Notes under the pieces: model-generated | The model's database searches: none | Told to the model about the DNA's origin: nothing | Seen by the model: only the letters and a program-made list of their open reading frames with translations | Program-made: the position numbers and the translations under genes | DNA from: Macrostomum lignano | Taxonomy: Eukaryota | Length of the DNA: 64,000 nucleotides | Assembly: GCA_002269645.1 (NCBI GenBank) | Contig: NIVC01000839.1 | Location: forward strand, 310,001-374,000 | Direction of reading: 5' to 3' | In this document: piece after piece, positions 49,018 to 51,192 of the stretch | Numbering within the stretch: the first letter of the stretch is position 1 | Layout: every line of letters starts with the position of its first letter

Positions 49018-51192
49018 ATGCGAATCAGCAATGTCAATATCTACCGGGCTGATCTGCCCCTGCTAGACGAAAGCTACAACTGGTCCGATGGGAAATCCGT
49101 TCGAGTACTCGACGCCACTGTGGTCGAATTGGTCACCGATTCCGGTATTCGAGGCTACGGCGAGTGCTGCCCGTTGGGACCGAACTACCTGCCGAGCTAT
49201 GCTAACGGGCTGAGGACCGGATTAGCGGAACTGCGACCGACTTTGATTGGCTTGGACCCCTTGGACATTGAAGTGGTCAACAGGCAGATGGACTACAACT
49301 TGAAGGTGATGACCTGCACTTTAACTTTTTCCCTATCCTAGGGAACATTCCAATCCACTGTCTTATGTACATTCCAATCCACTGTCCTATGTACATTCCA
49401 ATCCACTGTCCTATGTACATTCCTATCCACTATCCTATGTACATTCCAATCCACTGTCTTATGTACATTCCAAATTCCAATCCCCTGTCTATGGACATTC
49501 CAATCCCTTGCCTATGGACATCCTAATCCACTGTCTATGAACATTTCTGTCGCCTAGCTGTCTATTGGCCAAATCAACTTTGATTCAGAGCACCCGCCTA
49601 GTTATGTAAAGTACATTTCAAATCACAGGGCCATCCGTACGTAAAATCGCCGGTCGACATGGCGCTGTGGGACATCTTGGGAAAGTTCACCGGACTGCCA
49701 GTGTGCACCCTGCTCGGCGGTCGATTCGGAGACTACGTGCCGCTGTATCGGCCAATCAGTCAGGGCAGCCCGGAGGAGATGGTGGAGAGAGTGCGGCACT
49801 ATCGCGCCACCAGAGGCTACCGGCGCTTCCAACTGAAGGTTGGCGGCAGTGACGAGATGCTGGACGCTGCTCGGATTCGCGCGGTTCGATCGGCACTTAC
49901 GGATGGCGAACTACTGGTGGCGGATGCTAACACGGGTACAAGAGTTCGATTGCAATTCAGAGTGTTGGTGCAGGCGATAAACACCTGTGGAAGGGCCGCT
50001 AGTTGGGGTGTTGGTGCAGGCAATAAAACCCTGGGGAAGGGCCGCTAGTTGGGGTGTTGGTGCAGGCCATAAAACCCTGCGTAAGGGTCACTAATTGCGA
50101 GAGTCAATTCAGGCAATAAAACCCTGAGGAAGGGCCGCTAGTTGGGGTGTTGGTGCAGGCCATAAAACCCTGGGGAAGGGCCGCTAGTTGGGGTGTTGGT
50201 GCAGGCAATAAAACCCTGGGGAAGGGCCGCTAGTTGGGGTGTTGGTGCAGGCCATAAAACCCTGCGTAAGGGTCACTAATTGCGAGAGTCAATTCAGGCA
50301 ATAAAACCCTGAGGAAGGGCCGCTAGTTGGGGTGTTGGTGCAGGCAATAAAACCCTGGGGAAGGGCCGCTAGTTGGGGTGTTGGTGCAGGCAATAAAACC
50401 CTGGGGAAGGGCCGCTAGTTGGGGTGTTGGTGCAGGCAATAAAACCCTGGGGAAGGGCCGCTAGTTGGGGTGTTGGTGCAGGCCATAAAACCCTGCGTAA
50501 GGGTCACTAATTGCGAGAGTCAATTCAGGCAATAAAACCCTGAGGAAGGGCCGCTAGTTGGGGTGTTGGTGCAGGCCATAAAACCCCGGGGGAAGGGTCA
50601 CTACCGTATTTATTTAGGACTGTTCTGCAGGCATTAAAGTCTTCAAGTGAAAGTAATTAAACTTTTCTAATAAAAATCTTACCTAGGATGGCTCCCGCAC
50701 CAAGCGGTTCGAGTGTGCCAGTCTGTCTCCGACCTGGATGTGTACATCGAACAGCCCTGCGCCACTATGGATCAGTGCCGACAGGTGCGCGAGGCGAGCG
50801 CCTGCGGCCTGCCGTTTATCTTAGACGAGAGCATCGACTCGCTGGATAGCTTGCTGTCAATGCGCGGAGCGGCAGACTGCATCAATATCAAAATTAGCAA
50901 AGTTGGCGGCCTCACAAAAGCCAGGCAGATGAGAGACCTGGCTGTTCACCTGGGCCTAGCCATGGTGCTGGAGGACTGCTGGGGCAGCGACTTCGCCACG
51001 GCCGCCATTGCTCATCTGGCGCACAGCACGCCAGAGAAGCACAGGCTGATGAGCGCTGACTTTAATACTTACCATCCGGTGAGAACAGGACACCTGGCCA
51101 AGCCGCTAACCAATGATAGGGGCGGCATGGTGGCGCCGGGGGGACCGGGCCTCGGTGTGGAGCCGAACTTTGCCGCTCTGATTAAAGTCTGA
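49018..51192 (+). CDS. Enolase-superfamily (muconate lactonizing enzyme subgroup) enzyme, cis-3-hydroxy-L-proline dehydratase-like, 366 aa; exons 49018-49305, 49629-49935, 50687-51192
   Basis: The three exons total 1101 nt in frame. Motifs GYGECCPLG, GHPYVKSPVDMALWDILGK, FQLKVGG, DANTG|W, EQPC, LDE, INIKISKVGGLTKA, EDCWG, PGLG. Superfamily call is secure; substrate is inferred. Confidence 0.88.
49340..49540. repeat. ~24-bp repeat (TACATTCCAATCCACTGTCCTATG)n, intron 1 of the dehydratase-like gene
   Basis: Tandem units. Confidence 0.88.
49985..50600. repeat. ~44-bp minisatellite (GGAAGGGCCGCTAGTTGGGGTGTTGGTGCAGGCAATAAAACCCTGG-like) with higher-order insert, intron 2 of the dehydratase-like gene
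   Basis: Units interspersed three times with a CGTAAGGGTCACTAATTGCGAGAGTCAATTC variant. Confidence 0.92.

Follow-up and report, generated by a model that had tools for sequence, protein, structure and literature searches.

A three-exon gene in the genome of a flatworm

The DNA analysed here, referred to below as the window, is a stretch of 64,000 nucleotides from Macrostomum lignano contig NIVC01000839.1. Between positions 49,018 and 51,192 it carries a gene of three exons separated by two GT-AG introns (Table 1). Splicing yields a coding sequence of 1101 nt (366 codons and a TGA) that no stop codon interrupts; 8 codons 5' of the ATG there is a stop in the same frame, and the donor of exon 1 reads AAG/gtgatg (the slash marks the exon boundary). 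This structure, which an earlier note had proposed as a 366-aa frame split by two introns, was borne out in three ways: (i) a tblastn search of the window with the spliced protein returned the three exon blocks only, (ii) both exon junctions are crossed without gaps when the protein is aligned to the solved structure 4MGG, and (iii) an independently made public model, UniProt A0A1I8GLQ4 (P0001), is identical at aa 1–350, a segment spanning both junctions. UniProt thus already lists the protein, as an unnamed MR_MLE protein. The motifs quoted in the same note were all located: QLK at residues 164–166, DANTG at 195–199, EQP at 220–222, LDE at 244–246 and NIKISK at 265–270, with YNWSDG, GECCPLG, YLPSYA and GHPY in the N-terminal domain.

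Table 1. Features of the M. lignano enolase-superfamily gene, in window coordinates
Feature	Position	Strand	Details
Exon 1	49018..49305	+	ATG and codons 1–96; N-terminal half of the capping domain; YNWSDG, GECCPLG and YLPSYA blocks
Intron 1	49306..49628	+	323 nt, GT-AG, phase 0, between K96 and G97
Minisatellite in intron 1	49345..49545		24-nt unit, 8.2 copies, 81% matches
Exon 2	49629..49935	+	Codons 97–198 and base 1 of codon 199; GHPY; QLK lysine K166 (strand 2); first metal ligand D195 (DANTG)
Intron 2	49936..50686	+	751 nt, GT-AG, phase 1, within the G199 codon (N-T-G-W)
Minisatellite in intron 2	49962..50597		46-nt unit x 13.7; higher-order period of 185/231 nt
Exon 3	50687..51192	+	Remainder of codon 199 through codon 366 and TGA; metal ligands E220 (EQP) and D245 (LDE); K267 (NIKISK, strand 6); E294/D295/W297; D323/N325; C-terminal PGLG
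Candidate polyadenylation signals (inferred)	51257..51367	+	ATTAAA at 51257, AATAAA at 51362 (pattern positions); AT-rich 3' flank

The gene is part of an animal genome and is not a contaminant. Both introns carry minisatellites of the host type; arrays of this type make up 36% of the window, in which the unit of the intron 2 array has no second occurrence. The flanking genes in the window encode BTB-kelch, Tc1-like transposase, ZNFX1, PLAC8 and rhodopsin-type GPCR proteins, with animal genes on both sides within the 64 kb, and no hydroxyproline gene cluster was found among these neighbours. The GC3 of the gene (0.706) matches that of most neighbouring exons (0.63–0.77). These features uphold the view of the earlier note that the gene is integrated. 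They also bear on the proposal that the locus is a non-functional relic whose frame has survived by chance, or bacterial DNA mis-assembled into the contig. Two public models lend this proposal some substance, as the C-terminus of P0001 is frameshifted and the model of a paralog, P0002, lacks 27 residues and carries W22L. However, the copy in the window reads through to the family-consensus C-terminus, its 1101-nt frame is open over three exons with canonical splice sites, and it keeps the invariant residues described below. With introns, neighbours and composition all host-like, we consider a relic or an artefact very improbable, and contamination and pseudogene were both rejected.

An enzyme of the MLE subgroup closest to 4MGG

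The protein contains two Pfam domains, MR_MLE_N (PF02746, 3.8e-14, aa 34–126) and MR_MLE_C (PF13378, 3.4e-42, aa 146–359), both matched far beyond chance. NF043002 was its top NCBIfam family with 469.5 bits, the runner-up family reaching 123. Compared with solved structures, it matched 4MGG at 399.7 bits (E 1e-118) and every other at 283 bits or less. The AlphaFold (AF2) model has a pLDDT of 93.1 and superposes on 4MGG with a TM of 0.95 and an rmsd of 1.4 Å, the TM over MLE-subgroup structures being 0.82–0.95. 4MGG, a protein of L. aggregata IAM 12614, itself reaches 713 bits on NF043002; PMC5144071 describes the LhpJ enzyme of this organism as a bifunctional c3LHyp dehydratase/2-epimerase. 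The flatworm protein and the Labrenzia enzyme 4MGG are of equal length, the former without a targeting extension, and they share the two-domain fold, the Q-x-K lysine of strand 2, the D/E/D ligands and the lysine of strand 6. They differ in that the flatworm protein derives from a three-exon animal gene, is 53% identical in the structural alignment and has an activity that is predicted from its sequence. Identities among the members of this family are all 55% or higher. One bacterial ortholog has prolidase-like, DPP-IV/S9 prolyl-peptidase, DHDPS-family and GntR genes as neighbours.

Conservation of the catalytic residues is complete. The metal ligands D195, E220 and D245, which the DSSP assignment of the model puts at the ends of strands 3, 4 and 5 of the barrel, occupy aligned positions that are invariant in 322 bacterial and 17 animal-clade sequences and in 4MGG, 2RDX and 2QDD; K166 (QLK) and K267 (NIKISK) are likewise invariant across all the sequences compared. 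Among the 148 columns conserved at 97% or more in bacteria, 134 are kept in M. lignano (133–142 in the other animal copies), including Q164, K166, D195, N197, E220, Q221, D245, E246, K267 and K270 as well as E294, D295, W297, D323 and N325. Assignment to the MLE subgroup of the enolase superfamily, which the earlier note had drawn from the motifs, is therefore sustained by the Pfam domains, the metal ligands, the two lysines and the model fold.

The same holds for the suggestion that the protein resembles the dehydratase of cis-3-hydroxy-L-proline more than HpbD, the 4-hydroxyproline betaine 2-epimerase/proline betaine racemase (4E8G, 4IZG, 2PMQ, 4H2H). HpbD is from the same branch of the MLE subgroup, that of enzymes for proline derivatives, and has the same lysines and ligands, but it matched the flatworm protein at 202 (4E8G) and 177 bits (2PMQ/4H2H) with 29–32% identity, below 4MGG, 2RDX, 2QDD, 2PS2, 3EEZ and 2PCE. 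Membership of HpbD was rejected on these grounds, and the idea of a proline-betaine substrate is without support.

Two other enzymes of animals invite comparison. ENOSF1, the L-fuconate dehydratase familiar from vertebrates, is a Mg2+-dependent, enolate-forming member of the enolase superfamily found in animal genomes; unlike the flatworm protein it is of the mandelate-racemase subgroup, and its substrate is an acid sugar. The fuconate dehydratase family was absent among the NCBIfam matches of the M. lignano protein, and ENOSF1 is no close relative. L3HYPDH returns 3-hydroxyproline to proline. Its cofactor-free proline-racemase fold, and the Fe-S aconitase fold of other enzymes, use chemistry unrelated to that of the flatworm protein, so that the resemblance is one of analogy, not homology. 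What these enzymes would have in common with it is the product class, delta1-pyrroline-2-carboxylate, and the role of taking 3-hydroxyproline to proline (PMC5144071 for the enzymes other than L3HYPDH).

Homologs in several animal phyla form one clade

The searches for homologs included single-sequence searches from Sanderia and Lingula. Because the genes of most assemblies in the protein database had been called in prokaryote style, animal copies with introns were probably under-detected. Three named animal homologs were found, all uncharacterised: XP_013389552 (LOC106158194) of the brachiopod Lingula anatina, CAH1778258 of the annelid Owenia fusiformis and EP00794_P014318 of the jellyfish Sanderia malayensis. 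About 13 further sequences belong to the same clade, most of them shown or inferred to be eukaryotic; for ERZ25066847, ERZ25067906, ERZ25878582, ERR6349729, 3300030709 and GCA_024449665.1, the terms "cnidarian-like" and "eukaryotic" rest on tree position, on adjoining split eukaryotic genes or on an mRNA-like layout. Intronless copies of the clade lie on multi-Mb contigs that also bear split eukaryotic AGK genes. Among 322 bacterial or metagenomic sequences, the 17-sequence animal clade was recovered with a neighbor-joining (NJ) bootstrap of 94 (85–97 with maximum-likelihood (ML) distances), the nodes around it having NJ bootstraps of about 10 or less.

Gene structure differs among the homologs: Lingula has 5 introns, Owenia 4, M. 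lignano 2 and the cnidarian-like genomic copies none. Two introns, at GE/VCPLG and KQ/ARDLC, are common to Lingula and Owenia. Intron 2 of M. lignano corresponds to intron 3 of Owenia, in the same codon and the same phase 1 (NT-G-W); the probability of such a match by chance is 1.3% under uniform insertion and ~4–6% if only G/G sites are eligible. No counterpart to the position of M. lignano intron 1 was found in Lingula or Owenia.

The earlier note had left a choice between horizontal acquisition and patchy retention, and had set against acquisition the finding of homologs from many animal phyla in a clade that follows the species tree. This is largely what we observed. Acquisition in the flatworm lineage is not supported: there are homologs in at least three other animal phyla (Brachiopoda, Annelida and Cnidaria), they group in one clade, and they have intron positions in common with one another and with the flatworm gene. 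Patchy retention agrees with the data.

A long branch for the flatworm protein

Trees were built by NJ with bootstraps, and the flatworm protein was placed by a self-written ML procedure using a BLOSUM62-derived rate matrix with F and G4, a coarser approach than the LG or C-series models. The copy is fast-evolving, with a pendant branch of ~0.6 substitutions per site, whereas the Lingula, Owenia and Sanderia homologs of the same enzyme family have short branches. The nine best ML positions all lay within the animal clade or on its stem. The likelihood-weight ratio of the animal clade was 0.9999 and the best non-animal position was 9.4 lnL worse, but this preference is non-significant (RELL 64%, z 0.73), so that the grouping of Macrostomum with the other animals in one clade is favoured without reaching significance. 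In the NJ tree, Macrostomum branched at the base of the ingroup, outside the animal clade. NJ support for joining it to the animals was 10–14%; animals and Macrostomum were monophyletic in only 14 of 100 bootstraps with gamma ML distances. Neither the NJ tree nor the ML placement gave the protein a bacterial sister group with support. Individual residues were also compared: all 17 sequences of the clade carry K316, as does Macrostomum, but none of the 322 bacterial sequences does, and Macrostomum has four of the six pan-animal diagnostic states, the bacterial maximum being three.

These observations bear on whether Macrostomum, or a macrostomorph ancestor, received the gene by a separate transfer from a bacterium and later gained its two introns, one by coincidence at the Owenia position. 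The position outside the 17-sequence clade in the NJ trees, the non-significance of the ML preference, an identity to bacteria (58–62%) as high as that to animals (57–62%) and the private intron 1 would all fit such a transfer. However, a basal NJ position is the expected product of long-branch attraction to the outgroup, and the top ML placements all fall in the animal clade. The coincidence of intron 2 in codon and phase would have a chance of ~1–6%, K316 and a count of pan-animal states unmatched in any bacterial sequence point the same way, the best match beyond Macrostomum is P0004, of the cnidarian-like group, and the composition is wholly host-like. We regard a separate transfer as quite unlikely. 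With homologs in other animal phyla, an intron shared with Owenia and no supported bacterial sister, flatworm-specific horizontal transfer was rejected as the leading reading.

Taken together, these data make it likely that the M. lignano locus encodes a Mg2+-dependent MLE-subgroup enzyme of the enolase superfamily, and that this is an ancient gene of the animal clade rather than one transferred recently to the flatworm. It would belong to a clade spanning Cnidaria, Brachiopoda, Annelida and Platyhelminthes, kept in few, mostly marine lineages, and would already have had introns in the spiralian ancestor. The animal clade may plausibly derive from bacteria, in which case this origin would be ancient, or else from an older eukaryotic gene.

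Divergence of the flatworm copy and its possible substrate

Catalysis may be pictured as follows. Mg2+, held by D195, E220 and D245, would bind the carboxylate of the substrate. Of the two lysines that face each other, K166 (end of barrel strand 2) and K267 (strand 6), one would abstract the alpha-proton, leaving an enediolate stabilised by the metal. The 3-hydroxyl could then be lost to yield delta1-pyrroline-2-carboxylate; alternatively, reprotonation on the opposite face would give the 2-epimer. A ketimine/Pyr2C reductase would next produce L-proline, and the enzyme might thus serve in the salvage of dietary or microbial 3-hydroxyproline-type imino acids. The compound cis-3-hydroxy-L-proline itself is not known to be a metabolite of animals.

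The hydroxyproline substrate put forward in the earlier note stands as far as the nearest relatives are concerned, which are 4MGG and NF043002. It falls short as an assignment: the curated equivalog cut-off of NF043002 is 500 bits over the whole protein, and the M. lignano protein, at 469.5 bits, misses it, whereas other members of the animal clade score 560–594 (Lingula 594, Owenia 579, Sanderia 573, P0121 578, P0050 560, P0043 564 and P0243 591). Nine replacements at otherwise invariant sites are private to Macrostomum (F31L, C109L, A138P, C284A, F319L, T322A, S326T, A333G and R340T); the T-D-F-N-S-Y segment past the last barrel strand holds three of these. Because the score lies below the cut-off and these sites have changed, assignment of an exact substrate is tentative; and because several of the private changes fall in stretches that usually give the active sites of the enolase superfamily their shape, specificity may have shifted.

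On this account the flatworm enzyme could keep the fold and chemistry but have as its substrate a proline-type acid other than cis-3-hydroxy-L-proline, for example the 3,4-dihydroxyproline of diatom walls, trans-3-hydroxy-D-proline or a proline carrying an N-methyl group; the reaction could be that of a racemase, an epimerase or a dehydratase. The proposal is about function alone and does not conflict with the gene being an ancient animal one. The shortfall on NF043002, when the seven animal-clade members scanned all pass, is what such a change would leave, as are the private replacements and the long branch; the replacements are kept in both M. lignano paralogs, which suggests fixation and not decay. 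Set against this, all catalytic and metal-binding residues are retained, the conserved columns kept fall within the range of the other animal copies, the model superposes closely on 4MGG and the betaine epimerase HpbD is much less similar. We hold a change of substrate to be possible, if somewhat doubtful.

Implications

A further scenario is a single transfer from a bacterium to an animal before the cnidarian-bilaterian split. It would have brought early marine animals an enolase-superfamily route for imino acids of the 3-hydroxyproline type, parallel to the proline-racemase-type L3HYPDH, the gene remaining intronless in cnidarians, with introns gained in spiralians and the gene lost in most other lineages, Macrostomum having shifted to a diet-linked substrate such as the dihydroxyproline of diatom walls. 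Taken in all its parts, this scenario is speculative and we think it unlikely.

To our knowledge, the widely known enolase-superfamily enzymes of animals are only enolase itself and ENOSF1. Our literature searches returned no description of an animal MLE-subgroup enzyme for a proline derivative, and nothing relevant on horizontal transfer in Macrostomum or on 4MGG. The weight of the finding is limited in that it involves neither a recent horizontal transfer nor a new enzyme chemistry. Together with its relatives in Lingula, Owenia and jellyfish, the locus points to a second, bacterial-type route from 3-hydroxyproline-like compounds to proline in some invertebrates, most of them marine. M. lignano is a model amenable to transgenics and RNAi, so the function is directly testable, and the gene offers a clean case for studying ancient retention versus transfer, the gain of introns by a gene that once had none and the drift of function along a fast-evolving flatworm branch.

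A minisatellite-rich host gene

An ORF of 366 aa, split by two GT-AG introns with minisatellites, had been proposed in the earlier note at 49018-51192, and inspection of the window between positions 48500 and 51700 confirmed this gene model. Joining the three exons yields 1101 nt, i.e., 366 codons and a TGA stop; the exon blocks are the sole tblastn matches of the spliced product in the window, and the alignment of the protein with the nearest solved structure, 4MGG, is gapless over both exon junctions. The M. lignano UniProt model A0A1I8GLQ4 is identical (100%) over residues 1-350, both junctions included. 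All the motifs cited in the earlier note were found in the protein. Past residue 350 the two diverge: A0A1I8GLQ4 ends in a shorter, frameshifted tail, and the window copy runs through to the PGLG...C-terminus that is the family consensus. The probable cause is an indel in the exon 3 G-run at ~51139-51146, in the public model or the assembly behind it.

The gene is integrated in the host genome, as had been claimed. Contamination is ruled out by the identity to the M. lignano UniProt entry, by the flanking genes (a BTB-kelch gene, a Tc1-like transposase, a ZNFX1-like helicase with an RZ finger, a PLAC8 gene and a rhodopsin-type GPCR in the same 64 kb) and by base composition: its GC (0.589) and GC3 (0.706) agree with those of most neighbouring exons (GC3 of 0.63-0.77 in 6 of 9). 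The minisatellites of its introns are of a kind common in the window: 39 arrays of tandem repeats with a TRF score of 100 or more, most with a period of 10-50 nt, occupy 22,952 nt (36%) of positions 1-64000. A second M. lignano paralog, located outside the window, shares 91% identity with the protein.

Several further features were observed in the window. Many of its long six-frame ORFs are merely translated minisatellites, and a (TCAA)n microsatellite starts 230 nt past the stop codon of the gene. The uninterrupted Tc1-like transposase ORF may be part of an active or recently active element. The end of another ORF (...FHFHWGS...EHRL...) resembles an alpha-carbonic-anhydrase exon following a translated minisatellite.

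Features of the window and of the loci around homologs
Feature	Sequence	Coordinates	Strand	Description
Exon 1	window	49018-49305	+	
Exon 2	window	49629-49935	+	
Exon 3	window	50687-51192	+	
Intron 1	window		+	323 nt; GT-AG, phase 0, after K96; AAG/gtgatg...cacag/GGC
Intron 2	window		+	751 nt; GT-AG, phase 1, inside Gly199 codon; ACGG/gtacaa...cctag/GATGG
Intron 1 minisatellite	window	49345-49545		24-nt unit x 8.2
Intron 2 minisatellite	window	49962-50597		46-nt unit x 13.7
(TCAA)n microsatellite	window	51422-52196		~194 copies
ORF, possible alpha-carbonic-anhydrase exon	window	142-825	+	
Tc1-like transposase ORF	window	25581-26831	-	416 aa; DDE_3 and HTH_Tnp_Tc3_2
ZNFX1-like gene	window	30773-41742	-	multi-exon
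RZ-type zinc finger	window	30773-31168	-	part of ZNFX1-like gene
AAA_11/AAA_12 helicase	window	37871-39607	-	part of ZNFX1-like gene
ZNFX1 domain and Gly/Arg-rich N-terminus	window	40204-41742	-	part of ZNFX1-like gene
Neighbours of bacterial ortholog P0219	L010	1-17104		DHDPS-family, GntR, PALP, M24 prolidase-like, M14, DPP-IV and two further S9 peptidase genes
Cnidarian-like homolog	L003	6001-7101		intronless
Cnidarian-like homolog	L004	6001-7101		intronless
Cnidarian-like homolog	L005	6001-7101		intronless

A cis-3-hydroxyproline dehydratase-like enzyme

The earlier note had assigned the protein to cis-3-hydroxyproline dehydratase-like enzymes, closer to these than to the 4-hydroxyproline betaine 2-epimerase HpbD, and both statements proved correct. 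The protein carries the Pfam domains MR_MLE_N and MR_MLE_C and scores 469.5 bits on the NCBIfam equivalog NF043002, the next-best NCBIfam family reaching 123 bits. Among solved structures, 4MGG is the clear best match (399.7 bits, E 1e-118), followed by 2RDX and 2QDD (283 bits) and Aspergillus 2PS2 (245 bits); the HpbD structures score 202 (4E8G) and 177 bits (2PMQ/4H2H), which rules out membership of HpbD. An AlphaFold2 model built from a 42-sequence alignment (pLDDT 93.1, pTM 0.92) superposes on 4MGG with a TM of 0.95 and an rmsd of 1.4 A. 4MGG, which itself scores 713 bits on NF043002, comes from Labrenzia aggregata IAM 12614; in this species the MLE-subgroup enzyme LhpJ catalyses the reversible 2-epimerisation of cis-3-hydroxy-L-proline and its irreversible dehydration to delta1-pyrroline-2-carboxylate (PMC5144071). 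In a 342-sequence alignment, 148 columns show a conservation of 97% or more in bacteria; the flatworm protein retains 134 of them, K166, D195, E220, D245 and K267 included, and the non-orthologous 2RDX and 2QDD retain 93. The bacterial gene context fits the same assignment, as the neighbourhood of the ortholog P0219 looks like one for the utilisation or catabolism of proline/hydroxyproline peptides.

From the conserved residues, Mg2+-stabilised enediolate chemistry with a two-lysine acid/base pair can safely be inferred. The substrate is less sure, because the flatworm copy alone falls below the curated NF043002 cut-off of 500 bits (the seven other animal-clade members scanned all pass, with 560-594 bits) and has private changes at conserved sites. 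All nine changes (F31L, C109L, A138P, C284A, F319L, T322A, S326T, A333G and R340T) fall at sites with a conservation of 98% or more in bacteria that the rest of the animal clade keeps without exception or almost so (76% or more), and they recur in the paralog model A0A1I8G9Z1 wherever it covers the site. That model also shows 7 substitutions, one of them W22L at a Trp invariant in animals, and is missing the first 27 residues of exon 2; either its acceptor was mis-predicted or the duplicate is decaying. By analogy with the bacterial and mammalian 3-hydroxyproline pathways, the product Pyr2C would be reduced to proline (PMC5144071). The N-terminus coincides with that of the bacterial enzymes and carries no targeting extension, which makes a cytosolic location likely.

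An animal clade with shared introns

Database searches retrieved three named animal homologs: Lingula anatina XP_013389552 (134-kb contig), Owenia fusiformis CAH1778258 (35.7-Mb scaffold) and a Sanderia malayensis sequence from EukProt. A tight group of ~11 further, cnidarian-like sequences shares 73-81% identity with Sanderia. Two of its members, inspected at three loci, are intronless ORFs on multi-Mb contigs; all three loci adjoin the same split eukaryotic acylglycerol-kinase gene (DAGK_cat and AGK_C), and local synteny is thus conserved. A third member of this group, P0015, likewise has no introns; its contig, from a fragmented assembly, measures 1.9 kb. P0050 also lacks introns and lies on a 462-kb contig that carries a reverse-transcriptase ORF and a sparse set of short ORFs. 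In P0043 and P0243 the layout resembles that of an mRNA, the CDS being richer in GC and the 3' tail behind it AT-rich (1.7 and 0.23 kb, respectively). Among the cnidarian-like contigs, one of 457,705 nt holds two copies, P0124 and P0125. In P0003 (ENA, 449 aa, 3.9-kb contig), a stretch covering about residues 49-130 is duplicated internally, which is either a true tandem duplication or an artefact of assembly. Gene calling in the protein database was prokaryote-style for most assemblies and would overlook animal copies with introns, so that the gene may be more widespread among animals than these searches show.

These 17 homologs form one clade in the NJ tree of 342 sequences (bootstrap 94; 100 for the cnidarian-like core), with a support of 85-97 when gamma ML distances were used (52 taxa). 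The flatworm sequence sits on a long branch, with a mean distance to bacteria of 0.60; the corresponding values are 0.44 for Lingula and 0.33 among bacteria. NJ places it at the base of the ingroup and recovers a monophyletic group of animals and Macrostomum in just 10-14 of 100 bootstraps, as long-branch attraction would be expected to produce. In a likelihood placement against a backbone of 51 taxa (BLOSUM62-derived rate matrix + F + G4), the nine best positions all fell within the animal clade or on its stem, with a likelihood-weight ratio of 0.9999 for this clade, the best non-animal branch being 9.4 lnL worse; support for this placement from RELL resampling is limited to 64% of replicates (z 0.73). 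Independent diagnostic characters agree with it: K316 is present in 17/17 clade members and in Macrostomum and in 0/322 bacterial sequences, and Macrostomum has 4 of 6 pan-animal states, bacterial sequences 3 at most. Membership of the flatworm sequence in the animal clade is judged quite probable.

According to exact exon models, Lingula has five introns and Owenia four; two positions, GE/VCPLG and KQ/ARDLC, both phase 0, are common to the two species. Owenia intron 3 interrupts the Gly codon of N-T-G-W behind its first base, and Macrostomum intron 2 matches it in codon and phase, in a stretch of the alignment free of gaps. Under uniform insertion, a match between either flatworm intron and any of the 7 Lingula/Owenia positions has a probability of 1.3%; it rises to ~4-6% when only G/G or RG/G sites are eligible, as only one or two of the 7 homologous sites then qualify in the flatworm CDS. 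This common position indicates that the intron-bearing gene very probably predates the flatworm/annelid split.

Origin and significance

The earlier note had suggested a horizontally acquired or patchily retained route. A flatworm-specific horizontal acquisition is not borne out: the Lingula, Owenia and Sanderia homologs group together and an intron position is shared between Owenia and the flatworm, so that a recent transfer into the flatworm fails. Deeper in the tree, the nodes linking the animal clade to bacteria lack support, with bootstraps of ~10 or less (NJ), and Lingula is no closer to Owenia (68% identity) than to its best bacterial matches (69-71%). The absence of introns from the cnidarian-like copies and their presence in the spiralian ones fit an ancient gene of bacterial origin with later intron gain, and also fit retroposition or intron loss; the data are compatible with either ancient transfer or ancient eukaryotic ancestry of the animal clade.

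In UniProt the flatworm protein stands unnamed as "MR_MLE domain-containing protein"; those of Lingula and Owenia are labelled "uncharacterized", and a literature search for animal members of this enzyme family retrieved no paper. Because the reading as a recent transfer fails and the chemistry is known, the significance is moderate only. The locus is an animal member of an already known kind of enzyme, and what the analysis adds is an animal clade with shared introns, together with a divergent flatworm copy.
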